A DNA stretch of 64,000 nt from Botryllus schlosseri (GCA_051294905.1 CM119379.1:19964001-20028000), one strand, 5' to 3'. Counted from the first letter of the stretch, positions 1 through 64,000 are shown. The notes: a model not told the origin generated them from the letters alone. Numbers and translations are program-made.

Positions 1-272
1 TTTGCTATTTTCAGTTTGTCAAGTAGAAGTAGTTCAATCTTCCAATGAGGAAGATAGCCCGAGGAATTTCGGGGCTGTTTTCACGGAGTATCAACATTTA
101 ATTTTCATAAAAGTTTAGTAAAGTCCAGAATTTTCGTCACGCTTCGCGCGCAGTGTTGGTTGGATACGGAGTGACCAGACCATATGTATGATTTCCCGAA
201 AGTATAGGTGATGAATATAATTTAGGTAGAGGGTTGGAGTGGTTCCGTTCACAGCACATTGTCGCCCTTCGC

Positions 273-4026: not shown

Positions 4027-4112
4027 TACACATCAACGGGATGTAACAAGCAATAGCCAGGCCACATGTGAATCAAAATAATTTCCTAAAGCAACAGCAC
4101 GAACTCTGCATT

Positions 4113-36243: not shown

Positions 36244-36750
36244 GTCTATACTATCACGATTGAACCCCCACATCGGCGAATTGACAGAGTGCAATCTTGA
36301 TTTTCCGGCCGTCTTCCCCTTGGCTTTTTTTGTACCCAAGTAACATGAGTGACTAGCCCTACCGCACTGTCAGACACCAATATCTATTACTTCTTCCCAT
36401 ACCCCTACAAACTGAAGAACCATCCCAGAGTGCTATGGAAGGCATGTGACATGACCCATTGAGTATTTGAAGATACAACCCACCAAGCATAAAGTTTCCA
36501 CTGCCCATTGCAATTTCAGACTCAAAATGATTTTCCAAAACAACATTTTTATCAAATTCAAAAACAATCCGACCAAACAACAATCATGATAATTAAATAT
36601 AGGCAAACATTGATTCAAAACTTTCCATGCTATGGCAGAGTTCAATCACATGACCTCGTCCGGTGACTATAAAATGAAAATAAGTGGTCCACGACTGTAA
36701 ATTTCACAAAAGCATAATTATGTCCGGGGGTCAGCAAATCGGTCGTAATC

Positions 36751-39736
36751 TTAGGTAAATCCACAGCACAAACCAACCAAGCAGGAAGCAACCGGTGATA
36801 TAAAAAGCAGGCATATCAAAAGAGTATAAGAAAAAAATGTAATCATCTCGACGCCAATACGTGACGATGAATAGGACCCGTCGTACGAAATCATCAAAGA
36901 CACAAACACCGAATATGTCAACGTAAAAAGTAAAACACAGAATCTTAATAGTATTGCCCGATATTCTAAGTACGACAGAGATATCTGGCCGTAAGGGTTA
37001 TAAGGCTGCGCCAATCTGTGAGTTATAATGGAAGACGACTTGCTGGTACTCAAAATCATACTTTGTACGTCCTCGGGTATGGTGATCCTGATTTTCTGTT
37101 TCGAAATGGGATCAACGCAATATCTTTGCAAACGCCTGGCCCCACTTTCCTCATCCACATTGCGACGAGAATTACTGTTGGCCGGAAAGTTTTGATAAAT
37201 AACGTTGACTTTTAGGTCGTCTCCGATAGCTTCCAGATTGGAGGACGGTCTTACAACTTTTCCTTCACTTTTCGATGGAGACAGGGAATGGAACACTCGG
37301 TTCTGAAAAAGATGAGGAAGGAATTTTGTAGGAAATCCGACATCATCGATTTTAAAGCGGAAAACACTGTATTCACGAGATATCAGCAAGGAATTAGCCC
37401 TCATTGGTACTATAGTAAAAGTAGAAGTAACGTTGTAAATTTCTACTCAAGTAGAAGTAGGGATTTCCGAGTAAATATAAAGTATTCTAGGCCCAGTTTT
37501 GCTTAAAAAACTGATAAATGTCAGTTGGAAGTAGCATAAAATCGTGATCATTTGGGTGAGTAGCACAAGTATGCAAAATCTACTTGGAGTACTTTCAATG
37601 GTACAAGTATTTCGTTACTGACCACCTTTGGATTTGGACGACAAAAACAGAATCCAAATCCATGCTAATATCAACCGTAGACAGCAATACGCCTATTTTT
37701 CAGCGGGGCTGACGGAATGCGTTGACTCCAAATCATCCCAACACTGAAGCACAGCGCACTGGTGATTACTGTTCTCCTCAAAATTTATTGTGCTCTCTTT
37801 AAATAGAATGGTTATCACAAGATACCTACAAGTCTGGCGACCAAACGCAACCTGTAACAACGCACTGCTACTCTTTCGAAGCGCCCAAGTAGATTTTCAT
37901 ACTTGATCATTGCACAACTTCCTCAAGTTGTGATTTTGAACATCTTCCACTTCTACTCGACAGTTTTCTAGACAAAACTAGGCCTAGAATAATTTTTCTC
38001 TACAAAATTGCTACTTCCACGTCTAGTTTAGTCCCAATCATGTCTAATTGTTCACCTCTGTTGGCTACTAACACCACTAGCTGAGCACCACGAATGTGTC
38101 AACATGACACTGCGATATTATATCCACAACGCATACCTTCTCATCAAATTCTTGCAAGAACAATGAAGATGGTATCCTCGTCACTGTGGTTTCCCTGATT
38201 ACGTGGGTGGGAAATATAGTGCTCTCTCCCAGCTCCCCGCGAAAGTGAATTTCATCGGTCCCAATAGCTTTATCTGATTTATTATCACGATTGGCATCGC
38301 CCGCGGGACCCCCCGGTTCCGGCATATCAGTCTTCCTCTGGTACGGCACCGTGTTTTTGACACAACGACAAACCGAGAGAAAAGCCATCAGCCACAGATG
38401 AAGAGCAACCAGCACGGGGTGAGTCCCTTGCCAGTAGCTGAAAGGATCTTCCATGACGCGTTTCCATTTTCCGGCCCACCGTTCCAAAAGCATTATTCCG
38501 ACCGCAGATATCAGCGTAGTGACGAGGAACATGATTGCTTTCGTCGCCGATATGTAGCTTCCTAATAAATTTCGTACAAGCCCCGTGTCTTCGGATACAA
38601 AATAAATATCGGGATCTTCCATGCCATGATACAGAACGTCGACGTAGAAGCTGTTGGCCACAACAAAGCAGAACACACACATTTTCTCAAACCGAGAGAA
38701 ATTAGAAGTGATAGGCTGAGTGACGTTGCTCTTCGAAAATAAGCACAGCCACGGTATGCGACTCATGAGCATCGCCAGTCTATCGCGATATTTCGAAAGC
38801 CTTTTCATCACGAAAGATTGCCTTCTCGGCTCCAGACACAAAGTTTTAGGCACCGCGTGCTGAAGTAACGCACCGCATGGCTTAAATCTCATCCATCTAT
38901 TTAGGACGGATTTTATGGAAGACGCACTTCTCCAACATAGCCTTTGACCCGTCGATGGATTTTTAACATCCACCTCACTGATGACCATAAGATCTCGAGC
39001 CGAATCCTGTCCAAAGGTAGAGTTACTCTGGCTTTTTTGCGTGGCAACATCATCCGTCCTTTGTGCATCTCCCGAACAATGATCGCAAGCTATCTCTTCA
39101 GCGTTTATGACATCATTGAAGTCTTTTTTCAGTGTGTTGCTAACAGCGACCATTTGAATTTTTGTTATGACGGCAGTGTTCATCGGTAAGTGTAATCCGA
39201 CCGTATCGGTGAAACCAGGCCTTAAAAACAAATGGAGATAATATAGTATACCATTCCCACCTGCAATGATGATGTACCTAAGCAGTCCTTTACAGGAATG
39301 GCGAACCCACACCCAAGGTTCGTCACTGTTATCATTTTCCGTGACGATATGAAACAGAAGGTCGACATCGGATAGCTTTCTTTTCCATGCAGTCTTAATG
39401 TTCACTTGCAAGGAGGACTTTTCACTCTCCTGCTTTTCATCAGAAGAAATGAATACAATGTATCTCTGAACACGCAAGATACATCATCAGTACTTGAAAA
39501 AGACAGTGCCACAATGTTATCATACTTTCCACCTGTCCTTCACGTCTAGAATATAAGCTTGATACAGCAAGCAACCCAAAACAGCATACAATGCGATAAT
39601 AAACCCTGGTATTTCAAACGATATCATATTGCTGCTTTGACTGTATACACACTGAATTGGTGCGCCGTATACGGAAAAGCGGTACACGATAGGCTGTATC
39701 TTGAGTATGGTTTGTGAGATACGCAATCGTATATAC
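36751..39736 (-). CDS. Polycystin-1-like TM1, divergent PLAT and TM2-5 region of the giant gene
   Basis: TM1 IPGFIIALYAVLGCLLYQAYILDVKD. PLAT begins RYIVFISS and includes VISEVDVKNPSTGQ. PWLCLFSKS...NFSRFEKMCVFCFVV...VLYHG corresponds to the PKD1L HLWxSVFxRP...FTRVQR motif. The last exon has two TM helices and then a stop. Confidence 0.78.
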
Positions 39737-42700
39737 CTGAACAGAACACATTTCAATATGACAGACCATTAAAATACAAAGACCGCATAAAAAATTGCCT
39801 CGTTTGAAAAGTCGCAAAGTTGTAGAACACGGGCGGATATTTGATTGATCCATTGTAAACGTGGAATGGTTCAAGCGCAACCCAACCATCACCGTTCAGT
39901 GACATGTCGATGGCAAAAGTCTGAAAAACAAAATCATTTTGCGCACAAGGCTTGCAGAAAAGTTGGTGCAGCGTGAAAGAATTCAGAAAGTAGAATTTCA
40001 TGAGCTGTATGACAATAAATCGATGCATCAAGTGAGGTTTGGCCACATTTTTTGCTTGCATTCTTTGCGTGAACAATCGTAAGGCATGAAGTAGGTTATC
40101 TTTTAACGTATTGCATAGTCACCTAAAATGTACAATGTAATGTTGATGAATTGTTTTGTTAGCAAGTTATTATAATTAAGTCATTATAATGGCAGTGAAT
40201 ATCTCCTGTGAATACTAGAATTCTAAAGCACACTCAAATCTTATAAGTTACTCAGGGCGTAAATGTTTACCCGCTGGAGCTCATAGACACCACGGCTGTA
40301 TTTCTGTAAAATACCAGAGTGAAAAATATCAAATGGGTCAGTCAGTATAGTTAGTTTCATGGGTTGCAGCTATGAGCATATGGCTGTACTGCTGTCAAAT
40401 AACCAGCAATGTGGTTAATTAATGGTGACAATTTTGTAAAGGGTTGCAGTTATATCATCTGATTTCAGCCAAAAGTAGTAGGATAGCATCTTATGAAATA
40501 CGTCAGAGTCGGGGCTGTTGTGCCCTTGTGGCAATTCATGTTTTCATTTTTTATATCTTTGTAATAAATATCGCATAATTTTCAAACAACTTGCTTCAAT
40601 TCCTGCTCTAAAGCCCATATTATAATTCTTCAGTAAAGTGATATTAGATAACACACCTACCTTGCTTCCCTGCTTCAAGGCTGGCAGTATCACTATATGT
40701 AATCGCTGATCAGTGATCATTATCAAAGCAATATCTTGATAAGTGATACCGAGTGTTTGCAATGCAATATTGAACGGAACTGTACCTTCACATCGTTTGC
40801 CAAATTATCAGACGTGTCAAGCCGTAAGCTGGCAACGGCATAATCATTATCGAGGTCCCACTCTACAGTCCACTCATCCTTATCGTTTAAAATCATCTGT
40901 GAAACATAAAAGTAATATAATCCGGGTTACGATGTTGACTTTCACAATTGCCCTACATCGGCCGGTCTCCAGTACGTGTAGGGATCTCCATCAAACATCT
41001 TCCATTCGTCGCAAATCACACCGGTGACCTCGTCAATATACGGCGCGTGCGGGCTTGTTATGTGGTCTCTGACAGCCGGAAGCAACCACTCTCCAGAGCC
41101 CGTCACAGTCAGATGCTGAAGCCAAAGAAAGTAGACCAGTGATTATAAACGGTTGCACTAAATTACCCTTTCAAAGCCAGTATTTACAATTTTTTTTATG
41201 GCACAGCGATCAATGCTACGATTTCGTTACCTGATCCGCAGCGCAATGAGAAGCAAGCATCGTTTGTGAATCAGCCGTGTAGGAATCCGAAATTGACGAC
41301 CTGATCTTCGAAAGAAGTCTCGATGCCACTAACAGTCGTGGCGTCGGCGTTAAGAAATTATTCGTCTCCTGCCGTATCCCAAGTATGAAATCTTCAATGC
41401 TCGAACCGACGGTGGGTTCTGGAATCGCGGAGTATGTAAAACTGCTTGTCAAAACATACAGTGATCTTACCGATACAGCGTACGGTAGCAAGCGATGGAT
41501 GCCAAGTTCCGTTAGATGTGCACGTCCCAATGACGGTCCTAACGCCACTAGTTGATATCCAAGCTCCCGTCAAATCTTGTTTGTCAGCCATGTAATATCC
41601 ATAATTGCATGTGATTTGGATTCGGGCGGTAACGGAATAATTCCCAACACCCGATAAGTCCGTTCGCGACGCGGAACTGATGACGCCCGGATCAGAACAC
41701 TTGATTTCTGCCGACAGAAATCTCAAGTCGATCAATCCCGATTTCACATGCAATATCAGCAATGAGTCGAGAGCAAAAATGAATGCATTATTGACAAGAA
41801 TTTTTTCTTTCGACAGAGTGCAAGTATCATGAAGTACAGTCATCGGTGACAAGGATATTGCCGCACAATGAAAGGATAAACTTTCTAATTACAGGCTAGA
41901 TTTGGGCACAATGACAGCATACGACATTTCGGCACCATGCTGTCTTAACATGAGTAGAGGTGGTCAGTAATGAAGTACTGACATTAATTACTAGAGTGGG
42001 TATGTTTTTTAGACCACTTCCAGTTTTCAAGGCAAAATTGCCTTCTTACACTTTCTCCAAATAGTTTGGGGTATATTTAAAGAGTTTTCAAGGCAAAACT
42101 GTTTACTTCTCACACTTTCGATTAAATGGTTTTGGGGTATAGTCATAACATTTGTGGGAAATAGCTCTGGTAACAGAATTTATTTATAAAATTACACATA
42201 TTTAGAGTATCACTGGTGCGTTAGTCGCTAAGGTGCAATTTCCAATTCGGGAAGTGGTCACCTCCGATTAACTGCTTAAAGTATGCAACCTATCGATCAA
42301 ACTTTTCTTCTACTTTTGCTTGAGTAACAATACTGATTACTTCAACCACTCCTGATCATATGGCTGTCGACTTGAAGCGATTTTTCTATTAACAATCGTC
42401 TTATGCCCCTTTCAAAATATTTCCAAATGACGTTCCCATAGAATAGTAGTTCGCAACAAAAACGTATGCAGTACTTGAACAAACGAAAGTTTGCTCCGGT
42501 TTCCAAGTGGCTTCATGCGAGCATGTCGTCGCGATCGACGTGACTCCGGGCCGGATAAAATAGCCGTAACGGCAAGTGTACTTTGCCACGGTCATGTAGG
42601 AATGCTTTCCGGACCAATATCGAACGGCGTCCTTCAATGCCACCGGATCTGGACAGGCAAGCCCTGAAGATAATAGTACAAAACCTCTCAGCACAAGGCA

Positions 42701-45700
42701 CAAGAAATAACCTGGAGCTGGTTGTGGTATAAAAATCGCTATAGGATCAGAAACTTCAAAAGCGAGTCTAGTTTGGTAGATGGATTTGGAGAAGTTCATT
42801 TAGCAGTTTGGGATGATAGGTTTAAACCAAAAATTCACAACTTTCGAAACTTCATCATTGACATGACTTGATGTACAATAGCTAATAATGCAACGGCCAT
42901 TTACTGATAAAAAGTCAATGCAAATCTCAAAACTAATAATGAAATTTTTATGTGTATACATGCAGCCAAATGGAGTACTGCTATTGGCATGTATTACTGG
43001 TATTGGCTGGTAGAACAATAACATAACAATTTTGATCACGGCTCATCTTACTTTCACATCTAGCGACCGAAATGTCATCACTCCACGTTCCGTTTTCCAA
43101 GCAAATAGCAGACATATATCCAACGTCAACATCCATCATCAGATAGCCGTGGGCGCAGAATGATTTCGCTTCATTCATGTAATAAAAATGTTGCGATGTT
43201 CCAATCCACACTCCACCGGTGATGTATCCATGGCTTGGAGGCAATGGCCGCATGCATTTGATCTCTATTTAAACATACCGGGATTCAATTCTCAGACAAC
43301 CTCAAGCCAGTTTGAAGTACCAACATTAAACTGTACAATCTCTCCTATTTGAAGAGACTATCAGAGGTAAAGAATTTCAATATGCAATTGAATAATATAT
43401 TCTTATATCTCTTATGCGGGGCGAGAACGGGCTTTGAGCACTGAGCAGTCACGGATAAAACATTTTATAAAGTGAGTGGAAAATTATGCGGGACAATCAA
43501 CGATTAAATATACCGGTGGATTGGACATTTCGATTGAACGTATTTTCCATGTTCTGAATTCACTCGATCTGCTAACCCCAATTTAACAAACCTGCGGAAA
43601 AGCGTCTTGTATGTTGACCAAAAGGACTCAAAACAAAACCAAAAGTAGGATTATTTCAGGCGACGTTCATTAAGCTGGCTAAGGCATTGCAGGATTATAA
43701 TATGATAATAGAACACAGAATTGGGATTCGATTCGCACCCACTGAACATACCCTATTGAAATTAATTTAAGATACCAGAATTAGATACTAATTATATAAT
43801 ACAATCAAGGGATTATTACTCCTGAGTCCTTGGAAATTATAATATTTGTCTACGGTTATGGAAATGAAGTATCCAATTTTGATGAATTTCCGCCCAGGGC
43901 AATTCCATCCTTCTTGGGAGCCACTACAAATATAGCTTCAACAGATACGGAAGTGTGCAATAGTAACAACGTAAAGACTAATGGCTAACAATGCCTACTA
44001 TCTCACTTTTACATTTGATATCGATCGGGTTCGGTTGCCAATTCACTCGGTCGACACATTTCGATTGTACGAACCGCATGAAACCGTTCAAAACCAAGCC
44101 TGCGTTACCTGTGTCGACCACGTAACCTAAAAAGACATTCTTTTAGAACAACGCCAACTGCCAACATAAAACAGCGCACCTTCAAGGCATGTGTAATTTG
44201 CTACCGCTCCAACAGTGTACTTCCCGACACTTTGTACGGCATTATCCACCAGCTGTGGCGGTCCACAATCATATACTGTCAATAAAAATCAGATAGTAAC
44301 ACGAGATAGAACAGAAAATTCTATATCATCTACGAACGTGAGCAAACCAAGTCTTTCGGGTCAGGGTGCCACTGTTGATCGTCCGAGCATTGAATTGTTT
44401 CCGTGTCCCACTCTGGATCCTTCTTTTGATCAAAATAATGACCGTCGATACAAGTCACGATCACCTCATCTTCATATTTATATTCAATTCCCGTAAGAGT
44501 GCTGTTATCTGGCTGATAAGGCTTGCGGCATTGTATTCCTGGAAGGGTAAAGGGCTTGTGTGAGCGATGCAGAGATGCAGAGCGGATTTGTGGTACGAGG
44601 AACTTGAATAACATATTTGTCGCAATAACATTTAGTCTTCGAAGCATTGATAGAAATATAGCAAATCAAGCAGATATAGAGTATGTAATTCAAAGATGCT
44701 GTGTGAATTAGGTCATGGCGAGAGCATTCAAATGTCTATACAACCCGAGCCTAGTGATGAAAGACACACAACAAATAGATATGGTCAGACCATTCATGGA
44801 ATATCTTTTACAATATTCAGATGGCACCAAACCTCCTTCTGGCGACATCAGCTGGGCTTAAGGCAAGATTTTGATGAATAAAAATAACAATTGATCCAAA
44901 AATATCGAGGTGAAAAAAAAAGAATGAGACTCGGAAAAAAACAATGAAATTGTTAGCTTATCAATATATTGTGTAGCACAATCTGGATTCCGTAACATGT
45001 GTTGACCAATTGATGAAACATATGAATGCATGAATGAGAAAGGGTTGACTTATTAAACCTTGACTATCCTGAGAAGGTTTGCAATAACTAAGAACAGAAA
45101 GAACTTTCCATATTGCAACTTTACTTACTTTGACAATTCAGAACCGAGACGCTCATATCCCATTCTTTATTGGCCTGGCATTTGGTAGATATCGACGTCG
45201 AAAATTCGCCAGAGTGCGGGTTTTGAAATATGAAGCCTTTGTCGCACGTGTAAGTGACAATGCTCTCGAACCGAAAATCATTTCCGTGCCTCACGCCGTT
45301 TGGTATGACGAGAGGCAACGAAGGGCAATGCATCACTGAGGAAATTAAAGAACATTTTTGAAGTTGACTCGACTTGAGCTTTACAAACATCTCGCAATCC
45401 AAGCCTTGGACATTGAAAAAATGCGCTATCAATGATACCATGATACATTTTCAGCAGGTCTGTATGAAAAAGACAATCCACACACTGCCAGTGGATAAAA
45501 CAACCGTTGTTGATTCGGGCCATGTAGGTAACATTGGGCCAGAGCCCTGTCGGAAACCGACATGTTTATTTCAGTCTGTATGAAAACCAGTACAAGTTAT
45601 ATATGTTTGCTTAATCGTGTGGTCAGTGCACCAGACATATTTTTCAAAATCTAAACCAACTAGCCAACCTGGATTTTGGTCTCGCAGCTATTCGGATAAG

Positions 45701-48700
45701 GCGATCTATCATTGGCATAAGAAGTTACAATTTTTTCGTTGAGGTGAATCTCCAAGTCCAGAATTGAGCCCGTGAATTGGTCACAATATGCACTTTGCGA
45801 TTTTGGAATAGGTATCGAGCCAATAACAGTAGCAAATTGGGAGGTAGTTGGTCAGATTAACTACCCACATCCCGAGCAATATGATGTATCCTAGTCCATT
45901 TGGACAATCTTAGCGAAAACTGAGAACAGCATATCATATACAAGATCTATGCAAGACCAATTAAACCTTATTCCTGCAAAATTTTAAGTGGGCACAAATC
46001 CAAAACGTAATTGAAAATATATATAAGCTATATGTCGTGATTGGTCCTCTACAGACAGCGCAAAGGAAAATTAGGCATTGGAGACGCATACCGACACAGG
46101 CGAATATCGTCGGGTTAGGTGTCCACGTTTTATATTTGTCACACTTCACTTGCAGCACACCGCTACCAAAGGAATAATGCGTGGGATGGATTCTGTATCC
46201 CGGCTTGCAAGTATAAGTGGCGACAGCATGTAGCGAGGTAGTGGCATTGACCAATTCCAAAGTAGTTCCCTCGATGTCGTCTGGTATGCCACAATCGACA
46301 CCTGTACCAAATATGATGGTATTTATTCAGAATAAGTTCCAGGGTTACGAGGGATACCTTCACAAAGTATCTGACTCGGGACAGTCGTCCAATCGCCATC
46401 TATTTTGCACGTAACCGAATAATATCCGTTGGATGGAGCGATGCTGAATTGATAGCCCATTTCACAGTCAAACATGGCTGTTTCACCAACTAAGTACTCT
46501 TTCTTGTTCGAAGGTGATGACGCAACTTTACTGTTGCGAGGTAATTCGGGATCAATGCAAGTCACGGCTAAATAGGAATACCAACAGCATCAGGTATGAG
46601 AAATATTTTGCATAAACTATCCATTCAATTACATAAAATATTAAAATTGTTAATCATATCCATTACAAAATAGTCGGATGATACCAGGTTAAACCAAATT
46701 CAGGCAAATTAATTTTCTCCCATAATTAATACTAGGCGTTGGAAAAATCTGAAAATCTAAGAGCAAATCCATCAACACTATTTAGTTGGATTGCAAACTC
46801 ACCAAAATGCCACCAACACAATGCGATGATTAATTTGATATTAAATTTTATAGTTGCAGCTTGTAGTGGTTTCATAGTTTGGAATGGAGTGTGAAAAATA
46901 GATAGCGGATTGATTAAAGACTCAATGACGCTTGAACGCTACGAGTTAGATGCTGATCTGTACCCTAATTACAATACCATACCGTTGATGACAAACAAAA
47001 TCATTACTGAACTTACGAACACAAGCGGGTACAGACGATGGGTCGGGATCCCAATTACCAGACTCGTCGCACACCGCTTCAACAAAATCAAGGTCTCTAC
47101 CCATCCAGTAACCTGCCAGAGACGCAACATACATGCGGACAAATCAAGGCATTTAGAAAATCAACCGCAGTACCGGCGGGGCATTTGAACTTGATCGTGC
47201 TTTTGTATTGGCTTCCCGCGCCGGCTTCGATCGAATGAGAAGACGTCGTTATAGCTTGCGGATCTTGGCAAGTCGCGACTTCATACAATGCATGTATAAA
47301 AATCAAAGACACAAAGTAATATCTCATTAAATTCATTACCTTGACAGTCCACGATAGCGTTATCGGAAACCCAGTATCCAGCTTCACCACATCTAGCGAC
47401 CTGCTCTTGTAGCTTCGAGGTTCCGTCGTATGCATAATGCCCAACGAGGCATCTGTACATCAGCACTGATGTATACACAGATCCGTTACCGTGCAATTTC
47501 GTATTTTCCGGCTGTCTGTCGAGTCCGCAGACTATTGCTACACGAATAAGTGAAAATTAGACGACGAAAACTTGTGAGAACCTACAATCCGCGGTCACAT
47601 ACGATTACACTGAATGGCTCGGGGATCTGGATTCCAAGTCGCGAGCTTTGTACACTGAATTGTGGTAGAGACAACTCCTTCTTTTATGACAAACCCTTTT
47701 TCGCATGTAATCATGACAATGGTGTCCAAGGTATAGTCGCTCGACACTTTGGAGAGAAATGCGTTTGCGGGAACAGAAGGAGGCTGACACAGAACAGCTG
47801 GAAAAGAGTTCACAATTATAAATAAAAGTGATGTCGTCTAGCTATAGAACATAGGCTACTATAAATCAATTTAGCTCACCGTATTGGCAAGAATACAGAT
47901 GTACATGAGCTCATGCTATGAGGCTTTACATGTATCAAACGTCGCTATGAATTTCAAAATTCAATTATTTACCAACATTTAATCAATTCTTCTTGCAATA
48001 CCCAAGAGTCGCATAGTTTAGGTTAACATGCGGTCCAGATCAATTTATGATAAGCAGTCAACATGGATATCGATAAGAAAAACCAAGGACAGATGGTACA
48101 ATATTTTTGATTTCTCAAACTTCAAATCTTTACTACATCTGCGTTTATAACAGGCTCACACCCAATAGCAGGATTAGCCTAGATAAGTTTTTTTATTTTT
48201 ATTCAGATCGACAGAACCGGGATTGTAGTTTCTGTGAAGTAGGAACGCAGTCTGACCTCACTGAATCCTCTCAGAATTCTATCGCAACCTTTTAATTAAG
48301 ATGGTAGGGATCATAGAGTAGCATATTCAATTCAGGGCTGTATTAGTATTAGAGTGGAACAGACCGTACCATTCACATTGCTTGACTCACTTTCACATTT
48401 GATGAGTTTCGGATCGGGACGCCACTGTGTATCCGCACTGCACACAATATCTGCACTAGTCTCACTAGCCGGTGAGTTTGATGTCTAGAAACACAGAGAA
48501 CGCTACAGATCAAGTTTCTGGAGATCGAGTCTTGTCACATTACCCGAAGCGTCGAGGGAAGCGATATCAAAAATGACGGGTCACACTGTACGACTTTGAG
48601 AGCGCCAAATAAATTGCTGTTCCCAACGGAATACGTTGCATTTGCGACATCCTCGGGTTCGCCACAATCCACTTCTGCAAAAAATGAGTTTAAATGATGG

Positions 48701-54700: not shown

Positions 54701-57700
54701 GCTGTACACAAAGGACAGGGGCACTTTTTCAGTAAAATTATCACAGTTTGGATGAAATATGTATAAAATAATCAAGTTTTAATTCCATCGTGAATGAGCA
54801 GGCCAATTCTTATACATTTTAACAATATATTCATAATATTGTATTTGTTTCTAAGATGTCATAATTAGTAGCATGCAGTGTAATTATTAGAGCTTCTTGG
54901 AGGTACAGAATTCGATTACCCCCGACGAGTGTCAGTCGAAATATTCGGGTTCATTTCAATAGGAATATACTATCCAATTGCATATTGTAATTATAGTTGG
55001 ATTTTTGAAATTCCTCATATGCTGATGATTGCCAATAAAAAGTGTCCGGTTGAAAAGCTTCAGTTGTAATATATTTACATTATGAATACATTATGAAATG
55101 CATAGGGAAGTTCTGCACCCCCCTTAAAATTGCACCACACATAACTGATTTAAAAGACATCTGCTTCAACATGCCACAAGGTGATATACAGTGCAGGACA
55201 CGGACACATGTTAGAGAAATATGTCCGATATAAACAAGGTTACACTCAGAATCGGACGGTAAAAAGTCTCTAACATAAATGGATGAATAAACCCACCTGA
55301 CAATATCTTGATAGCCGATGAAACTCTCGGTACTGTAAGTGGCATGTTCCAAATCACCGGGATCTCCACATTCAACAGCTGGATTGATATGAACAAGTTA
55401 TAAAATCAGTAATCAGTAGGGCAATTTTTTGACATATCAAAAATTGTCAAAATTTTATCGAAATTGTATCGTTAGGTCAAAAAATTGTAAGAATCATTTA
55501 CAAAGTAATTTTTTTTGCAACCGGCATTTCGCTTGTATGATAGGTGTTTGCACTGTTGGTGAACTTATCATTTGACATTTTACAGATTGTAGCCTTCTTT
55601 ATAGGCCTACCGTTGTAGACGGCCAATTATACGCTCATTGCGAATCATATACGGCCAAAAGAAAGAAATAGGTTGACCCGGTGTTATGCTCAACATACCG
55701 CAACATCCAAACTGAGGCGAGACTGTGTGGGCATTGGTTGTTATATCAAGAAGCGCATGATGAAAAACTGTGATGTAGACAGCATTGTCAGAATGAAGCA
55801 ACACGTTGTGTCGCCAGCAGTGTACGCACAACTTCAGTGTCGCCAGCTAACAACTGCTGCTGTTGAACGTTCTTTCTCCATTCTTGGCAATCCACTTGGG
55901 TAAGGACAGACACTTTCTACCCGAGAATGTAGGAAAGTATCTTTTGTCGTACCGCAATAAATTTTAGTTATTTTTACCATAATGCGTGATGTAAATACTG
56001 GAATTTTTTATAGGTCCAGATTTCGTTAAAATAAAGTTTTTGGATGTAAAAACTTGTCAGATTTCAAGTCAAAAAAGTTTATTGAGGCCAAAATATTTCG
56101 TAAGGGCAGACAGCTCCAACCAGAAATGAGGATAAGTAGTACAATTCTAACATTATGTGCGAAAAACACCGAATTTATATAAATAGGGGAAAATTTTTGT
56201 CAAAATTAGCTTTTTAAGGCAAATTCAAAATTTTGATTTCTTAGGTCACAATTTTCCGTTTTTTAGGTAACAAAATATCGCCCTAGCAATCAGATATTTC
56301 TAAAATGCTCATAGACTCACGAAGACAGGTAAATTCAGAAGGATCCGGGTCCCAAATGGCTTCCGAGGTACAAGTAGACTTTGCCTCGTATTTGCCTTTC
56401 GAAATCCAGTGCCCTATAAAGAGATCAAAGTGATTGTGCGGAAATAAAAATTCAATTCCACTGATTTTGTATTCAATTTCCACACAACAGCAGAGGTTGT
56501 CATCGTTTCTACTCTAGGTAGAAGTAACACCGTGAAATTGTCTCAATTACAAGTAGAAGTAGCTATTTCAAAACATATCAAAAGTATTTCGAGTATACGT
56601 ATAAAAATGAAGATATGAAATATACTCAAGTCTTAAAAACGAAAAATGACACTAGAAATCGGTGCAATTTTAGAAAACACTCATGCACTGCGATAAATTG
56701 GCTCTTTGGTCTTGTTTCCATGGCAATTTCACCAATAAAAACGATGCAAGCATGTCTCAAAACGACTTTCCACAAAATTCACTGTGTAAAACTTAATTAA
56801 CTTTGCCTAAAAACGCCAAGTAGGAGTGGGGAATTCTACAAATTTACTCAAAAGAAATATAAATTTTGAATACCCCTAAAACAACTACAGCATACGTACC
56901 GAGGCTACACTTGTACGTAATGGTTTGCAAGTAAGTCCATATCAGTCCGATCGTCTCAGCGTATTGAACGGGCGGGGGCGGCGGACAAATGATACCTGAT
57001 GTAGGCAAATCATAAGTCAGATAGAACGTGGAATCGGTCAAAAAATCTTACTAACCGACGCATTCTATTGCATCTAGTGACGGGAACCAATTTCCAGTCT
57101 CGTCACAAGTCACTTGCAATTCCAGTTTGCCGGGAGACACTAATTTTCCTGGACCGCACGAGTATACGGCTTTTGCACCAAATTCCGTGTTTGGAGATAC
57201 TGCAATGGATCATATATTTCTAATATTTGTTGACTTTGATATGAATATATCCGCCTTACTTAACGTGTGCAGGGTATTTGGCAGGTCAGGCAGAGGCGGG
57301 CACATCTGCACCGTGCATTTTATATCTTGTGGCGGCGGGGACCAATACCCAAATTTTGTGCAGTACGAGGACACCGACAAGAAACCATCTGCGGGGAACA
57401 TTAAATATTATCCGCAGTTACTCAAGTTTTGAAAATATATCACCTTTAGCTGAGCAGATTGAGTTGGCGTCTATGCTCCCTTGTATGGTCCAGCTGCCAA
57501 GCACGTCTGTGTAGCTATCGCCTGCGGTTACGTGAACGTTATTGGTGTTCTGTTGTGTTCTGGAATTGTAAAACAGTTTACGGTAGATTGAAAACTGTAC
57601 TGTACATTAGGGGTCTTCAAAAAATGACTTTTTTTTTTCTCAAATGGTACTGGCTACATGATAAAATTGTTAGGTTACCTAATTTAAGCCTACACACCCA

Positions 57701-60700
57701 ATTTAGTTCAATTCCAGCCAGTAGCCGCATTGCTACAGGAGAACAAAATTTTCTGTTCACCCTATGAAAGTGTCAGGTTGTCTATAGAAACGATGTCCAC
57801 CAAATTTGGTTCGATTCCAACCAGTGGAAGAGGAGTTATTGCCGTCGAAAAATTTGGATTATCAATAAAATAGTATTTACGGTGACCAACTCTTTGATTA
57901 TTTATTATAGGTGTGCACACTGTAAATACTATTTTATTCAAATACAAATTTTTTGACGGCAATAACTCCGCTTCCACTGGTTGGAATTGAGCCAAATTTG
58001 GTGAACATCGTTTCTATAGACAACCTAACACTTTCATGGGGTGAACAGAAAATTTTCAAATTTTTGGTAATTTATTTTTAGATATTAAAAATTAAATAGA
58101 AACTTTTTCTCCTATAGCAATGTGGATACTGGTTAGAATTGAACCCAATTTGGTGTGTAGGCTTAAATTAGGTAACCTAACAATTTTATCAAGTAGCCAG
58201 TACAATTTGAGAAAAAAGTCATTTTCGAAAGCCACTACTGTATGACGTACGTACATGCTATGATTATACATAAATTTTATAAATTTCGTCATAAATCACA
58301 TTTTGCAATGGAAATATATCTTGATTTGGCTCGAATCTGGTGAATTTTGAAGTCGCCTGAATTGTAAGATATATGCTTTGCTTTTGGTCTTTATAAGTTT
58401 CTTCAATGAAAACATGACACGGGTATCAGCCAACGGAAAAGCCATTGTCGAATAACAGTTTGACTTGGAAGCAATGGAAGCTAGTTCCTAATTACACAGA
58501 CATACACCGCCACCACACACCAAAGCATAACAACACAATTGACAGATGAGATGAGCTAAAAATGTAAAGAAACAGTTCCAATATATAATACCTGATGTAG
58601 ATAGGTGGACTAGCATCTTTAATTGCCAGTAGCAGCTTGTTTCCAGACATAGTCGGACACGTCCACAATTGCCTATAAAATCCAGAATTAGTATATTCAG
58701 AGACAGCGCAATTAAAAGCAAACCTTTCATCGGTAATCTTGCAAGGCTTCAAATACGCGACCGCCGATTCACCATCACTCATTCGAGCATCTCTTCTATT
58801 GATCGCCAGACACATCTGACGTTAAAAACACTTTTTATAACAAGCACAAAGAGTAAGTAGCAGCGTAGGAACAAACCTGTGTTCCAACATTTCGTATTAG
58901 ATATTCATCTTCCCACATCCATGTATATTTCTGATCTCTCCACAAGCATTCCTCAACTAGAACGAGCTTATTGCCATCCGCAGCCAGACATCCTTCGTCG
59001 TTTGGATGGTAGATTTGAAAGCTATTGCGAATTTCATAACCTGAACGACAAAAACTTCTAGTCGGAAGAGAAACAGAAGATTGGAAGTACTCAATAAGCT
59101 CTAAACTGCAGTAGAAGATAAATCAAATTGAAAAATTCGTCTATCGAGTGTTGTTACGAATACGCGTAGTTTCTAAACAGATATTGTGTTTGTGATTCTA
59201 CCAAAATTGAAAACAATGATATTACCGGTTTCATGGCACATGTATTGTAATTCGTGCGCGAACAGGAAACTAGAGCTGTTGCCTGCATTCAGATAACTGC
59301 CGTCACCACTTGGCTCTGGATCAGGACAAGTTATGTCTGAAATAGAACATGCAACATTTGACGGCTATCAAACATCACCATTGACGTTAAATTTCCATAC
59401 TTTGACACCATGCAACAGTTGGATCTGGCGACCATTCGCCTTTATCGTTGCACTGAATCGGGGTTCGAAGTTCGACGAGAGAAAAGCCGAGGTCACAAAT
59501 TATCAGGATTTCCGCGAGATATCTGCAATATATCTCATAATCACTCGTATCAAATCAGTAGATACTCAGCTCACCTGTAACTCGTGACGACTATTCTGGC
59601 ATTTGGTTGCTCCGGTGGTTTTGGACAAATCAAAGCTGGGCAAAACACAATGTAATTGGTTGAGAATTCTCATGAAATAGGATTGACATAGTGCTGTGAT
59701 GGAATGATATAAAAACTTGAAGTCAGATTCAATATGACCCGGCTAGCAATAAACTAGGTACACTGCATATAACCAAGGCATGCTTAAACCAGGGTTGTAA
59801 TGACTCGACTCAAGATATTTTGTGACTCGGCATGACTCGAGTCAACTTATCAAATGTGTTAAATGACTCCACTCGAGTCATTGTGCATGACTCGAGACTA
59901 GGAAGGCCAAGACAGACATTTCAGTGTAATTTCGAAGAATAGCAAAGTCACCACATTATTTGTATTTCGTCTATCAGTCCTGATACTTGGAAAATAGGGC
60001 TGTGTTCGGACTGAGGAAAATAATGATGTTATGAATGCGAGACATTCTATGTCACTCGAGCAGAGTTGAAAAAGTGGGCTGAACCGCGTTGAACTCAAAA
60101 CTCAGCAGTGAACACAATGACTTGGACTCGAGTAACGAGTCTCTACTCACTGACTTGCTACTTGGTTACAACCCTGGTGTGATCTACCTCTAGAGATGGT
60201 CGAATTAGCCAACATTGCACTCATACAAGCGGAAGCAGCCGTTTCCAAAACATAGAAAACCATTTCCAGTAGAAGTAAAAAAGGTCTGAAACTATTCAAA
60301 GAAGCTTTATCAAGTAAATTTGGTTGAGGTGTCCAACACTTTTAGCAATACATCTGCGAAAAGCTACTTTTGAAATTACAAGATGCAGATTTTCAACGGC
60401 GCGAACTGACCGATCAAACTAGAAATCGATAAATTTTCAAAATTATGCTATGCTACCACGATTCAGCATCTATTTCGTGTGTTTGCTTTGATAATTTCCC
60501 TCAGAAAAGAGATGCAAACCAATCAAAAAACTAATTTTTACTTTACATAAATCATAGGTAAGTGGTGAATGTAGGTAAATCCCTCTCGAATACTCCAAAA
60601 AAGTAGTAATTCCTTAGTGACCACCCCTGCTTATGTACGTCCAATAATAATCTACTTTTCCAATCTAAAATTCGGCTCTGGCTAAAGTCATCACAAAACC

Positions 60701-63700
60701 TATAAATGCAAGATGACAAGCATGAGCTTACCTTCGCAAATGACATTCTCCAAAGGATCAGGCTCCCACGTTGCATTCACGCTGCATACAAATCCGGTCA
60801 CATTGCCACGACCCTTAGCCACCCAATACCCGGGCAAGCACTGATACATCACTTCCGAGAGATACGTGAAATTAGATCCGACATATTCGGCGTAAGGTAC
60901 CCGAGGAGGATAGGAACACGTGGTAGCTGGTCAAGACAGGCTAATTACAAGAAGTACCCGATGAAAAAGTTGATTTCAACTTACTTAGACACTCAAAATT
61001 ATTCGGGTCAGGACTCCACAGCTGACTCTCATTACAACGACTTTTACGGGTAAAGTCCATCGGCTGGCGATCCATTGACGTTCCTACATCGCATCTGTAT
61101 AATACCACATCTCCATACTTGAAACCTACTGGTGGTGTTGCAGTCAACATGGAACCAGACGCGATAGATGGCGGATTAGGACAGGAGAGTTCTAAAAACA
61201 ATGTTTTTAAGATGAGATGTGGCAAGATAAACACCTATCAATCATACAGGGCATGATAGCTCTAAAAGCAATGTGTTTATTGAGACGGTTTGCGACCAAT
61301 TTCAACACTCAAATCTAAACAATACAAAGGGAATTGACAAGCCTCATCAAAAACTTCACATATCGATTGTAGTTGGATTTATGATGTCATTTTGAAACTC
61401 AGAAGAAACAAATTTAACAGTGACTGAGAGAGAGAGGAAGAGTTTATCTATTTTTTAACCATGAGATACACAAGGTAATATTAATGACCATGCAAGTCAT
61501 GAAATGATAATTGACATTAGATAAGAGAGGCTACATGACTGAAGTCTCCCATCCATTTCTACCATCAGTTAATTGGGAAAATTAAACGATTAAGGAAAAT
61601 AATATACTGTACTTTCACAAAGCCATGAAGATGAATTTCTGTCCCAGGCGATTAAAGTATCATTTGCCGAGTTGACGCAGTTGATTTTATCTTCCAACAT
61701 ATCTGGATCGCCGTTTATTCCATATCCCGTGTCGCAATGAATGAGAACCCCACGTCCGTCTCTTCTCCAGTCCTCGTAGATTGTGTATGCGTTTGCGGGA
61801 ACCGGTGGTGGTGAACACGTGTCATTCAATTCTTAATATGATATTGTGCTTTCATAAAGTCAATGCTAATACGTTTCGAATGGTATCATACTTTGCTGAC
61901 ATGCATAGTAGTGAGGGGTTAAGCAGCTTCTTTCTTCGAGACCTATTTTATCGTCTCCCAATACAGAATATGTGGCACACCACGGAGCGTACTGGACGCT
62001 TTTGATGATATTTTTGTTGGCGTTGCCCCTGTTTCAGATGTGTTTCGTTACAGACTATGGGAACACAAAATACACAGTTCAAAATAACTGATGAAGATTG
62101 ACAATGTGCAATATAAGAAGGGTGAATACGTTAGGTGGATAATTATTGTCATGGTATTGTAAATGAAAAATCAAGGGCATCAGCCAGGGTTGTAATGACT
62201 CAAGTCACGACTTTCTAATGACTCAAGTCATCTTCTCGAAATATGGAAATGACTCTATTCACACAGATTGACTCGACTTGGACTCGAGTCATTGCGCATG
62301 ACTCGGACCAAGTCATATGACTAGAGTCTCAGACGGCCAAGACCGACTATGCATGGTTATTACGAAGAATAGTAAAGTAACCACACCGTTGGTATTTCGC
62401 CTATTGGTACTGGTACTTGAAAATGTGACCAGAAACCGTTGAAAGTGAGGAAATTAGTATATTTTAAATGAAAATCATTCGAGACTCAAGTCATAATACC
62501 ATGACTCGGACTCGACGCTCTGCAGTGAACTAAGATTGACTCGACTTGACTCGAGTCAAAACTTTAAAAGTAAGATTGACTTGTGACTCGGAGCCTTGCG
62601 ACTTGGTTACAACCCTGGCATCAGCTCTGTTCCACCAACTCATCGAGTCACACTTGCCTGAAGCACCACACTACTTTGGCATTAGCATTTGAAGTATTGC
62701 ATTGGAACATTCCATCCGCATTAATTGTTTGAGCACACGCGTCGTCTCGGAAATTCATAATTCCCATTTGGCCTCCGTCAAGAGTAGCTCCACAAAAACA
62801 ACCGTCCTGCATTCCGGTTTTTATCGCAGCTTTCAACTCGATTCCCCTCGCAATACGCCCGCCTGCAAGAGATGTCTTCTTCATAAAACACAGCCATCGA
62901 ACATAAAACCCAAACGCCTCACCGTGCAAGTGACACGCAGCTGCCATTTCCTCATTATCAGCAAACACCTGATCGTCGGGCAGTTCAAAGAACTCGCAGC
63001 TATCCCCGGTTGCGGACATTGGTCTGTACCCAGCTTTTACGACAGCAAATACGTTTTCTGAGATGTAAAATAAAGAAATGACTGCAGATTCCTTGAAATG
63101 GCGAATGGTCAACAAGTTAATGTATTAATATTAACGAAGCAGTTTCCAACAGAACGTAGGTATTGGCTCTGGATTAGCTTTAAATATCTTAACAAGTTCC
63201 ACACTAATGCATAAACAAATAAATGCTAACCTGATGGTCTGTGCCACTCATCACAAAGATACCTAGTAGTTGTAGTTTGGTACATGGACGAGCAATTGTA
63301 TTCATAGTATTTCCCGGCAAGATGTGAACGATCATAAGGTTCAATCTGCAGGCGGGCAGTATAAGGGTGATGATTTGGATTTGTACAACTGCTGAAAGCT
63401 ACATACCTTATCGAAAAGAATGCTATAGGAATATTTTCGAAGCTTGATATGATACGGGTTTTTGGAACGACACGTCCAATGCTGCAATTCATCGGTGTAG
63501 TTGCAATTAAGCACTCTTAATCCGGGTATGATATCTGAACAGACATACTGGTTTGGATACCTTTACGAAAAACAAAAATTAACCTATATGCACAGCAATA
63601 TCAATCACAGATTGGACAAGACCCTTAGATATCTACCTTGCAGAATAAAAATCTCATTTACCTGACTGTGTATCCCCTTCCACTTGGAACGGTGCGGTCA

Positions 63701-63959
63701 AGCACAGTCCGGTTTGCACATGCATGAGATGATAGGTCGAAACCCACACCCATTCTAACCCACCAAGATCATTATATTCACAAGATTTGCTGTGAAGCAA
63801 TTATTGAATTTGATGTCGAACGGTTGATATTTGAATGAGCATACCTTCTCGCATAGTGATGTTTAGCATATGCAGATCTTACGTTCCCGTACGAATGCTT
63901 TTCGGGATCACCATACAAGCATCGACGTTTGTACGGGAGTACACTCATTTCGTCATCAT
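36751..63959 (-). CDS. Giant lectin-sushi-discoidin polycystin-1-like membrane receptor (5' end beyond the window)
   Basis: 52 phase-consistent exons (9764 nt, ~3,250 aa): 63959-63845, 63789-63662, 63534-63407, 63345-63231, 63057-62658, 62028-61892, 61831-61613, 61191-60985, 60926-60732, 59635-59575, 59522-59401, 59336-59226, 59040-58877, 58815-58724, 58672-58592, 57559-57444, 57388-57260, 57199-57056, 56995-56900, 56413-56321, 55378-55297, 54701-54592, 54526-54446, 54382-54260, 54168-53977, 53353-53150, 52014-51808, 51752-51564, 50963-50781, 49879-49688, 49628-49440, 49137-48937, 48674-48544, 48484-48391, 47797-47603, 47537-47340, 47278-47174, 47112-47017, 46567-46358, 46301-46092, 45335-45129, 44538-44338, 43264-43052, 42663-42475, 41707-41471, 41418-41231, 41115-40957, 40896-40786, 39920-39799, 39736-39526, 39465-38137, 37302-36751. 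Two donors must be GC. The single-gene model is inferred without RNA data. Confidence 0.72.
39650..41115 (-). CDS. F5/8 type C (discoidin)-like domain of the giant gene
   Basis: MFDGDPYTYWRP...EWTVEWDLDNDYAVASLRL...TFAIDMSLNGDGW...TRYIRLRI...YRFSVYG across four exons. Confidence 0.75.
41471..61831 (-). CDS. Array of ~28 sushi/CCP domains of the giant gene
   Basis: Repeated CxxP...N...Y.C..G(Y/H)W...C...G.W.P.P...C modules, mostly one per phase-1/phase-1 exon of 183-237 nt. Confidence 0.92.
49898..50321. mobile_element. hAT MITE (CAGGGTTGTAA family)
   Basis: Ends caaggttgtaatgactc / ggttacaaccctg; TSD catttttg / cgtttttg. Confidence 0.8.
51115..51154 (+). ncRNA. Minimal hammerhead-ribozyme-like motif (Penelope/retrozyme type), copy 1
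   Basis: accc CTGACGA gtgttagcc GAAA atat tt gggt: core motifs, stem I accc/gggt and palindromic AAATATTT. Part of a ~100-200 bp repeat. Confidence 0.5.
52129..52166 (+). ncRNA. Hammerhead-like motif, copy 2 (GAAA mutated to GATA)
   Basis: taacc CTGACGA gtgtcagcc GATA atat tc gggta, with the same downstream repeat (gaagttctgtacct). Confidence 0.4.
52242..53111. mobile_element. Tc1/pogo-type MITE, inverted relative of 3039-4026
   Basis: TIRs ccgtaattttccaagtata / tatacatgtaaaattactg with TA flanks; internal ~100-bp duplication at 52417/52517. Confidence 0.8.
54914..54952 (+). ncRNA. Hammerhead-like motif, copy 3 (CTGA mutated to CCGA)
   Basis: gattaccc CCGACGA gtgtcagtc GAAA tat tc gggtt, preceded by an inverted copy of the repeat tail (cttcttggaggtacagaa). 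Confidence 0.4.
55417..56285 (+). mobile_element. hAT deletion derivative with a transposase C-terminal remnant
   Basis: Termini TAGGGC / GCCCTA; TSD gtaatcag / gcaatcag. Contains a frameshifted LTTAAVERSFSILG...KDRHFLPENVGKY, the hAT dimerisation-type ERxFS motif. Confidence 0.82.
57444..59040 (-). CDS. Mannose-receptor CysR-type ricin B domain inserted within sushi domain 5
   Basis: FQIYHPNDEGCLAADG...WMWEDEYLIRNVGTQMCLAI...YLKPCKITDERQLWTC...LLAIK...SWTIQGS...ICS parallels MRC1 FLIYNEDHKRC...RWVSESQIMSVAFKLCLGV...QKWECKNDTLLGIK...RWKIYGTTDNLCS. Confidence 0.78.
57609..58238. mobile_element. Palindromic MITE with ~220-bp inverted arms
   Basis: 57620-57830 is the reverse complement of 57965-58230 apart from one insert; no clear TSD. 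Confidence 0.7.
59790..60176. mobile_element. hAT MITE (CAGGGTTGTAA family)
   Basis: TIRs cagggttgtaa / ttacaaccctg; internal sequence shared with the 49.9 and 62.2 kb copies. Confidence 0.78.
62185..62617. mobile_element. hAT MITE (CAGGGTTGTAA family)
   Basis: TIRs as above; perfect 8-bp TSD gcatcagc (62177-62184, 62618-62625). Confidence 0.9.
62658..63057 (-). CDS. Cys-rich WSC-like domain exon of the giant gene
   Basis: SCEF...EMAAACHLHG...WLC...GCFCG...DDACAQ...FQC...VVWCFR resembles WSC cysteine spacing; divergent. Confidence 0.45.
63231..63959 (-). CDS. N-terminal mannose-receptor CysR-type ricin B domain of the giant gene
   Basis: KRRCLYG...KSCEYNDLGGLEWVWVSTYHLMHVQTGLCLTA...LRVLNCNYTDELQHWTC...HIKLR...RYLCDE across four exons. 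Confidence 0.7.
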
Positions 63960-64000
63960 CTGATTCCAAGTTAGCGATGAGTATTCCATCTAATTACAGA

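Follow-up and report, generated by a model that had tools for sequence, protein, structure and literature searches.

A very large lectin and sushi receptor gene of Botryllus schlosseri that probably ends in a polycystin-1-like five-helix membrane module

Introduction

Does the dense run of short open segments on the minus strand of a 64,000-nucleotide stretch of the Botryllus schlosseri genome (GCA_051294905.1 CM119379.1:19964001-20028000; hereafter the window, of ~40% G+C and containing no N) belong to one giant cell-surface receptor, and is the membrane anchor of that receptor akin to the N-terminal half of polycystin-1? The run extends from 64.0 to 36.7 kb, many of its segments show C…C…W…C, as is typical of sushi (complement-control protein, CCP) domains, and the longest of them, at 39477-38080, covers 466 amino acids (aa). 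We find that the locus is a genuine gene, that it is transcribed and that it encodes a cell-surface protein of very large size. With a probability of roughly 60%, window positions 63989-36751 (minus strand) encode the ~3,300 C-terminal residues of the product of a single, very large and transcribed gene, ending in a polycystin-1-like five-helix membrane module. The product encoded in the window would probably comprise, in this order, a CysR-like beta-trefoil, a cysteine-rich module resembling Link and C-type lectin domains (CTLDs), 29 sushi domains with a CysR lectin inside the fifth, a discoidin domain, a first transmembrane (TM) segment, a PLAT-fold domain and four more TM segments.

Results

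Gene model and transcription

Curation by hand, guided by RNA junctions, by splice matrices derived from this gene and by the phase-1 rule that sushi exons follow, yielded a minus-strand chain of 55 exons (63993/63989 to 36751) that amounts to 9,954 nt and 3,317 codons and closes with a single stop (TAA, 36753-36751), with neither an internal stop nor a frameshift when the exons are joined in frame. An initial annotation had joined 52 exons into at least 3,250 aa; the in-frame chain stands, and the count has been revised, mainly on account of two tiny in-frame, stop-free introns that had been read through as coding. One of these, of 57 nt (39277-39221), is confirmed by spliced RNA contigs, and the other, of 60 nt (62922-62863), is a likely intron suggested by a gap of ~21 aa relative to the orthologue together with splice scores. 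Four automated exon-chaining runs, combining tblastn coverage with the trained splice matrices, had given 52-55 exons, of which ~12 were over-extended or split, and were replaced by the curated chain. All introns are GT-AG except for one GC-AG intron (39798-39737, donor AG/GCAATT), the junction of which was found in RNA contigs of two runs, and half of the introns (27 of 54) measure 52-65 nt.

The spliced product matches a predicted protein of the tunicate Styela clava (XP_039270628.1, hereafter P0002) from end to end, in a single BLASTP alignment with 41.4% identity (query 2-3312, subject 1659-4973, 2,883 bits, 3,361 columns). In tblastn searches of the window, four Styela proteins are strictly collinear with it, P0002 residues 1659→4973 corresponding to window positions 63990→36769. 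P0002 served as the orthologue reference throughout, and Pfam and structure prediction were applied to the Styela orthologue and to single window exons, in place of the spliced window protein.

Direct evidence of transcription comes from the comparison of four RNA runs (X1; X14, from a different study from X1; X10; and X17) with positions 36701-42700. A 2,626-nt contig of X1 skips nine intervals that end CT..AC on the plus strand, i.e. GT..AG on the minus strand, and carries the junctions 37302/38137, 39220/39279, 39465/39526, 39736/39799, 39920/40786, 40896/40957 and 41115/41231; short X1 contigs add 41418/41471 and 41707/42475, where the shorter side of each joint has only 30-32 letters. Nine junctions, from 42475 to 37302, are thereby present in spliced X1 contigs and most of them also in X14, a 1,976-nt contig of which carries the first four, with further ones in shorter contigs, and in both runs contigs with the junction 38137/37302 reach past the stop to 36725. 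Together, the junctions connect sushi 28/29, the discoidin exons, the first TM segment, the PLAT-like exons, the remaining TM exons and the stop codon. Since the contigs join sushi 28/29 to the stop, a separate start is not needed for the membrane part, and such a start is excluded as the sole form, in accordance with the single unit initially annotated: spliced contigs from two studies cross the end of the array, the discoidin domain, the first TM segment, the PLAT-like exons and the stop. A genomic retro-copy is an unlikely source of these contigs because the genome holds only two loci that match the module, both with introns. X10 contributed an unspliced 2-kb contig that looks like DNA or pre-mRNA.

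Word shares, the part of a stretch's sampled words that is present in a run, extend the comparison to the 5' half of the window. At 54-64 kb they reach 0.15 for X1 and 0.12 for X2 versus an exon fraction of 0.33, and at 38.1-41.9 kb 0.26 and 0.24, respectively, versus ~0.61, the ratio being about the same; the shares on the 5' half thus fit the exon content, as indirect support. We note that two intronic stretches (37419-37461 and 41958-41977) draw RNA reads or contigs that run into unrelated sequence, one joint lying on opposite strands (37460/41977), and that the only reads of X17 fall at this repeat (~37.42-37.46 kb and 41.96 kb). The two stretches resemble a repeat, dispersed or inverted, that is transcribed elsewhere.

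The membrane module

The module opens with TM1 (EIPGFIIALYAVLGCLLYQAYIL; 39541-39615, minus strand, as are all features below unless stated otherwise), which has a hydropathy of 2.08 over 19 residues, is conserved in P0002 and P0013 and is followed by a DVKDRWK motif; its exon is also conserved at two loci of other assemblies (L049 and L050). Five residues after this motif begins the PLAT/LH2-fold domain of the first cytosolic loop (38794-39465), encoded by exon 39465-39278 and the start of exon 39220-38137 and interrupted by a ~60-aa variable, probably disordered insertion (~39138-38959). TM2 (38691-38623), TM3 (38550-38482) and a cytosolic motif, GKWxRxxEDPxSYWQG, follow within 38359-38691, delineated by hydropathy and by invariant or near-invariant alignment columns. 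The last exon (37302-36751) supplies a low-complexity linker and a terminal TM pair (36963-36895 and 36828-36760; hydropathy 2.15 and 2.56), with the stop codon coming right after the last helix, and it matches P0002 4803-4973 in tblastn (E=9e-12).

The same order recurs in an alignment of 11 relatives, namely TM1; DVKDRW(K/R)RY; a block …T(S/A)WK…DVDLL…RPGFTDT…; a variable stretch; a block …DP…W…HG.P..F.L; TM2, with the opening N(L/F)(T/S)R.EK; TM3; GKW.R..ED..SYWQG; the long low-complexity linker; and the two terminal helices. Hydropathy thereby delivers five conserved segments (six in this species), the four after TM1 forming two pairs parted by the linker. The additional, sixth segment (VLVALHLWLMAFLSVCRCV, 38415-38359) reaches the TM threshold in this species but falls short of it in the Styela orthologues. 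Were it to cross the membrane, the C-terminal part would have the opposite topology. Within the module, 30 coding differences between individuals are listed among the best-supported 40 of 187 differences; 19 are synonymous and 11 non-synonymous, an excess that fits purifying selection on the module.

How the first cytosolic loop folds was addressed through an AlphaFold2 model of the orthologous segment, with a mean predicted local distance difference test (pLDDT) score of 58, and 62-83 in the strand blocks. When this model was compared with 48,161 chains using VIA-align, the top nine matches were all PLAT/LH2 domains (Z 9.2-6.8, 103-118 residues aligned), specifically lipoprotein lipase (9.2), PLRP2 (8.9), 15-LOX (8.8), Rab6IP1 (7.9), 5-LOX (7.8), 8R-LOX (7.6), plant LOX1 (7.4), coral 8R-LOX (7.0) and the C-domain of clostridial alpha-toxin (6.8), the next, unrelated match reaching 5.9. 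Foldseek likewise retrieved PLAT/LH2 domains from the PDB (E=4.5e-3) and PLAT domains from AFDB Swiss-Prot (E=3.4e-5), the probability being 1.00 in PDB, AFDB and ESM Atlas; PLAT-bearing clusters head the ESM Atlas matches, and PLAT proteins, including a PKD1L2 fragment, head those in the AFDB clusters. The models thus show a PLAT/LH2 fold in the loop after TM1, with five structure libraries agreeing, and the ~60-residue unstructured insertion probably explains why sequence profiles miss it. An AlphaFold2 model of the whole orthologous module, of poor quality (pLDDT 43.7), had already drawn PLAT domains with its beta part; its TRPML matches (E ~3e-3, probability <=0.3) and its helical-hairpin matches, including a polycystin-1/2 entry at Z 7.1, were treated as noise. 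In a language-model search with the whole module of the orthologue, the nearest named clusters were PKD1L2/PLAT (score 0.86, 184 of 256 features shared).

Of the half-polycystin module initially annotated, TM1, the PLAT fold and four more conserved hydrophobic segments are borne out; sequence searches detected no match to polycystin. Kinship to the polycystins is suggested by fold and arrangement only. Since REJ, GPS and the channel half are absent and sequence homology was not shown, we call the module polycystin-1-like rather than a proven member of the family, and our best reading is that it would function like the N-terminal half of polycystin-1.

Two further loci of the same genome came up as comparators. 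A canonical polycystin-1-like gene (L019, G000:C11:27088216-27091614) has a Pfam-recognised PLAT exon and a TM2 exon with HLWLSVVERPTRSRFTRVQR; the resemblance by eye of FSRFEK in the present module to FTRVQR in that canonical TM2 is not significant and was not counted. A 1,276-aa open reading frame (ORF) with a PLAT match was rejected as a polycystin comparator as it represents the DENND5/Rab6IP1 orthologue (L048:1914-5744, G000:C14; DENN, RUN and PLAT; E=1.5e-91 to PDB 3CWZ); this ORF is uninterrupted and intronless, which is unusual in an intron-rich genome.

The ectodomain

From the Link-like module to TM1 the ectodomain is wholly covered by sushi, CysR and discoidin domains. Its first module in the window, encoded by exons 1-4 (63231-63989; 63993-63845, 63789-63662, 63534-63407 and 63345-63231), is a candidate ricin-type, CysR-like beta-trefoil, collinear in tblastn with P0002 1659-1843 at 52-62% identity and below thresholds in profile searches (window exon 2 versus CysR_MRC2_N, E=0.061; orthologue region versus Ricin_B_lectin, E=1.3e-3). 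Exons 5-7 (61892-63057; 63057-62923, 62862-62652 and 62028-61892) encode a cysteine-rich module that looks weakly Link/CTLD-like. This region had been labelled a WSC domain, a label that we drop: at E<=1, neither window exons 5-7 nor P0002:1820-2070 match WSC (PF01822), and the only hit in the orthologue region is a weak one to Xlink (PF00193), which spans positions 13-92 of the 92 in that profile and, with 21.1 bits (E=3.8e-4), stays under the cut-off of 27. Taken singly, exons 5-7 have no Pfam match.

The rod that follows had been estimated at ~28 sushi domains; the array is borne out, and the number rises to 29, with a CysR/ricin insertion dividing one of the domains. Counting relied on a sushi hidden Markov model (HMM) trained on 18 single-exon copies from this gene itself, the 30 matches of which equal 29 domains in the spliced product. 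Independently of this model, Pfam Sushi (PF00084) recognises the window ORF 41397-41852 above its cut-off (E=4.2e-4) and 16 stretches of the orthologue (E=5e-104).

Sushi 1-4 (59401-61831; exons 8-12: 61831-61613, 61191-60985, 60926-60732, 59635-59575 and 59522-59401) correspond to residues 338-602 of the product according to the gene's own HMM and are collinear with sushi repeats of P0002. Sushi 5 (57312-59336) is broken after its second cysteine by a ~155-aa insertion with a CysR/ricin domain, the N-terminal half being encoded by 59336-59226, the insertion by exons 59040-58877, 58815-58592 and 57559-57444, and the C-terminal half by 57388-57312. The HMM recognises the two halves separately (model 1-37 at residues 604-649 and model 43-64 at residues 805-833), and the layout is identical in P0002 2257-2570. 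The inserted domain matches CysR_MRC2_N in window exon 14 (E=5e-5, partial) and in the orthologue (30.8 bits, cut-off 27), and consequently, of the ricin domains initially annotated, the CysR of exons 14-15 is upheld and the first copy is kept as a candidate.

Sushi 6-29 (41471-57305) comprise 24 domains recognised by the HMM with E values of 1e-9 to 3e-23, mostly as single phase 1-1 exons, seven being spread over two exons, and with RNA joints at 41707/42475 and 41418/41471. They occupy exons 17-47 (57388-57260, 57199-57056, 56995-56900, 56413-56321, 55378-55297, 54701-54592, 54526-54446, 54382-54260, 54168-53977, 53353-53150, 52014-51808, 51752-51564, 50963-50781, 49879-49688, 49628-49440, 49137-48937, 48674-48544, 48484-48391, 47797-47603, 47537-47340, 47278-47174, 47112-47017, 46567-46358, 46301-46092, 45335-45129, 44538-44338, 44275-44180, 44126-44007, 43264-43052, 42663-42475 and 41707-41471).

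Between the rod and the membrane lies an F5/8 type C (discoidin) domain with an N-terminal linker (39640-41418; exons 41418-41231, 41115-40957, 40896-40786, 39920-39799 and the start of 39736-39526), as had been annotated. F5_F8_type_C (PF00754) scores 31.4 bits, above its cut-off of 28.2, in P0002:4090-4330; the single window exons are too short for a Pfam score of their own, and window 41118-40771 matches P0002 4148-4251 in tblastn (E=5e-15, 37% identity). All five junctions of these exons are present in spliced X1 contigs, and part of them in X14. The domain ends in …YIRLRI…VYGAPIQC, and because its last cysteine lies ~12 residues before TM1, there is no room for a GAIN/GPS region.

Continuation upstream of the window

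The gene had initially been taken to extend to 63959, a position that falls inside exon 1. This exon is internal, with an acceptor AG at 63991-63990 in phase 1; the open frame at the window edge starts directly after a TAG, the AG of which is that acceptor. It joins in frame, in phase 1, to a donor (ACTG/GTAATA) at ~64.07 kb that ends a C-type-lectin exon (…RFWIGLEDRF…NWVWNVNGTD…NFIT), the Styela protein reading …RFWLPLIDHV…NWMWKTSNEE…EFIQ/DGILLGNL… across the same splice point. The 7,864-aa Styela isoform remains collinear for ~8.1 kb past the window, to isoform residue 3312, over three CTLDs and an EGF-like region. As judged from these alignments, the gene extends beyond the upstream edge of the window and the ricin domain is not its N-terminus.

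On the same strand, 8-59 kb beyond the window end (G000:C9:20036100-20087000, L003-L012), we observe an extended array of repeats, each ~80 aa in length and with four cysteines (CFG.VYPE.C.KYYGPHP.EC…W…CL.EG…), which also occupy the initial 3,300 residues of Styela isoform X2. Pfam offers no credible match for them, the sole hit being SAP18, without an aligned stretch and apparently spurious. The same gene may also include this array. Further out, on the plus strand at 134.8-165.8 kb (G000:C9:~20098800-20129800), exons match those portions of the Styela proteins that hold CTLDs, EGF modules and the repeat, which suggests further lectin-type genes between the gene and the paralogue described next.

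Distribution

A tandem paralogue (L013-L014 and beyond; L016) lies ~104-120 kb upstream of the window end, on the minus strand, with a sushi array, discoidin, TM1, PLAT-like and TM exons and 33% identity in the membrane exon. In Styela clava there are at least three loci (LOC120345301, LOC120345303 and LOC120346535), and two further ENA assemblies contain more distant relatives, one of which (L049) keeps the order sushi, discoidin, TM1 exon and large exon. Compared with 1.84 billion cluster representatives, the 466-aa ORF drew 11 matches, the informative ones being the Styela clava proteins P0002 (4,991 aa) and P0003 (1,805 aa) and the rest single-contig fragments; no Ciona or non-tunicate protein was among them. 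Two word-indexed protein searches for further relatives added almost nothing new, and the alignments are shallow for that reason. Judged by these sequence comparisons, the architecture is so far seen in Styela clava, the present genome and two other assemblies.

In full-text literature searches, neither the Styela locus names nor the combination of domains led to a description of the architecture. Its presumed novelty therefore holds for the papers searched and not for the databases, RefSeq already containing it as uncharacterized Styela clava predictions: the family is predicted in databases and undescribed in those papers.

Discussion

Based on the gene model, the spliced transcripts and the modelled fold of the first cytosolic loop, we propose a very large multi-lectin receptor on a polycystin-1-like membrane module. 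The observations that weigh against this reading concern the origin of the module and the extent of the gene. As to origin, sequence tests against PLAT and the polycystins are negative throughout. Pfam detected no PLAT, no PKD_channel and no family at all on the membrane module of 11 family members at E<=10; PLAT is likewise missing from the Pfam results for the large ORF, for eight further ORFs of the minus strand and, at E<=1, for P0002:4330-4470, and a genome-wide scan with the PLAT HMM (PF01477) retrieved 44 sites elsewhere and none at this locus. A profile search of PDB sequences with the module came back empty; hhalign assigned a probability of 0.7% to a match with PLAT exons of the same genome, the reference alignment being poor (ORF pieces with intron read-through), and of 0.3% to one with the canonical polycystin-1-like TM2 exon; and the ORF of the window itself, taken without TM1, had no usable match in a language-model search. 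Moreover, the structure models are those of the Styela orthologue, were built on 9-11 sequences and range in confidence from low to middling, and PLAT domains are found in many unrelated proteins, the fold alone being no proof of polycystin ancestry. Alternatively, then, the module may be a lineage-specific five-helix anchor unrelated to polycystin-1, with a PLAT fold gained independently or a beta-sandwich that is merely PLAT-like, in a tunicate lectin/CCP adhesion protein. This would agree with the missing modules (GPS without a Pfam match in the Styela orthologues, REJ without one in P0002 or P0003, and PKD_channel without one in the orthologues, i.e. the TM6-11 channel-like half is absent) and with homologues that consist of Styela proteins and unannotated fragments only. 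It accords less well with nine leading structural matches that are all PLAT, with language-model neighbours of the orthologue's module that are PKD1L2/PLAT clusters, and with five conserved TM segments that match both the N-terminal half of polycystin-1 and the Ciona receptor s-Themis-A. To our knowledge, a PLAT fold directly after the first TM segment of a giant, multi-domain, type-I-like receptor is known only in polycystin-1 relatives. We consider an unrelated anchor a serious though unlikely alternative.

As to extent, direct RNA evidence spans 36.7-42.7 kb only, the model for 42.7-64 kb is built on homology and splice logic, and in bulk RNA of X17, of which ~6% of the raw reads were sampled, no reads fall on exons in 36701-42700. 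Several products could arise through alternative starts, splicing and polyadenylation, with secreted or shorter lectin/sushi forms beside the membrane form and the chain of 3,300 aa or more as one, perhaps minor, isoform. Such a diversity would be in line with the end of the direct RNA junctions at 42.7 kb and with the Styela isoforms of 4,991 and 7,864 aa in RefSeq; we nevertheless regard it as rather improbable, given that spliced contigs contain all junctions between sushi 28 and the stop, that the contigs listed contain no start or end in this part (though contigs cannot show such ends), that word shares agree with the exon content in the 5' half of the window and that all 55 exons keep the frame. 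Least credible of all is a decaying pseudogene or a gene-model artefact merging neighbours. The homology-based upstream part and the disagreement of the automated models at ~12 boundaries before curation would be compatible with it, but the 9,954 nt in 55 exons free of stops and frameshifts, the end-to-end 41% match to the Styela protein, the existence of spliced transcripts and the prevalence of synonymous over non-synonymous changes among the listed polymorphisms leave it hardly any room.

If the proposed polycystin-1-like receptor is correct, it might operate as follows. The membrane module would derive from the N-terminal half, with its five helices, of a polycystin-1-type receptor and would be comparable to that of Ciona s-Themis-A, which has 5 TM helices; the protein would stay uncleaved at the cell surface. 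Glycan-binding modules (CTLD, CysR, Link-like and discoidin) would be held up to ~100 nm from the membrane on the CCP rod (29 × ~3.5 nm), with a phospholipid- or glycan-binding discoidin domain sitting at the membrane. Binding or tension could then be relayed through the helix bundle to the cytosolic PLAT domain, which could bind acidic lipids or adaptors, rather than through an ion-channel role of its own; without TM6-11, a pore position beside a TRPP channel would not be possible. Judging from these parts, the receptor probably recognises glycans or cell surfaces. Pattern recognition, allorecognition, gamete recognition and mechanosensing, the roles initially suggested, are candidate functions. 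A further-reaching scenario, to which we give little credence at present, is a tunicate-specific branch of polycystin-1 that lost REJ, GAIN/GPS and the channel half, was fused to a lectin/CCP rod and acts as a polymorphic self/non-self receptor of colonies, blood cells or gametes, analogous to s-Themis-A.

Should that scenario be true, the polycystin N-terminal helix bundle together with PLAT would constitute a self-standing signalling cassette. If kinship as such is real, the TM1-PLAT-TM2-5 half can work without autoproteolysis, REJ or pairing into a TRPP pore, which bears on PKD1. The locus also adds a conserved, expressed family of giant multi-lectin receptors to the candidate recognition receptors of tunicates, the closest invertebrate relatives of vertebrates. 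In practical terms it carries a warning, as Pfam does not recognise the PLAT domain, which came to light by structure prediction alone, and the RefSeq orthologues are named "uncharacterized".

Among known systems, the closest counterpart is the product of Styela LOC120345301 (XP_039270628.1, 4,991 aa; isoform X2 XP_077971250.1, 7,864 aa), which has the same CTLD, CysR-like and Link-like modules, sushi domains with an internal CysR, discoidin, TM1, PLAT-like loop and further TM segments. The Styela proteins differ in being automatic "uncharacterized" predictions and in having five rather than six hydrophobic segments at threshold. With the polycystin-1 family (PKD1, PKD1L1-3, PKDREJ and the sea-urchin REJ proteins) the gene shares a huge modular ectodomain with lectin-type modules, followed by TM1, a cytosolic PLAT fold and more helices; unlike that family, it is devoid of REJ, GAIN/GPS, the TM6-11 half and a coiled-coil tail, its PLAT domain is unrecognisable by sequence, and CCPs replace the PKD repeats.

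Ciona s-Themis-A is a tunicate polycystin-1-like self-sterility receptor of sperm that a review describes as comprising a hypervariable region, REJ, GPS, LH2/PLAT and a 5-pass membrane domain without the channel half (PMC9265791). The present protein resembles it as a tunicate receptor with PLAT and five TM helices and no channel half, and differs from it in that lectin, CCP and discoidin modules take the place of the hypervariable region, REJ and GPS; the library search detected no sequence similarity to s-Themis-A. In carrying a rod of tens of sushi domains at the cell surface, the protein recalls CSMD1-3, SVEP1, complement receptor 1 and the polymorphic tunicate sushi receptor vCRL1 of Ciona. 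Those long CCP-array proteins are single-pass or secreted, and are not known to have a PLAT domain, a multi-pass anchor or a CysR inside a sushi domain. Finally, CysR-type ricin and C-type lectin domains, the former of Pfam family CysR_MRC2_N, are combined as in the mannose receptor family (MRC1, MRC2, PLA2R and DEC-205), from which this protein is set apart by the absence of FNII, by a CysR that is internal instead of N-terminal and by its multi-pass membrane module.

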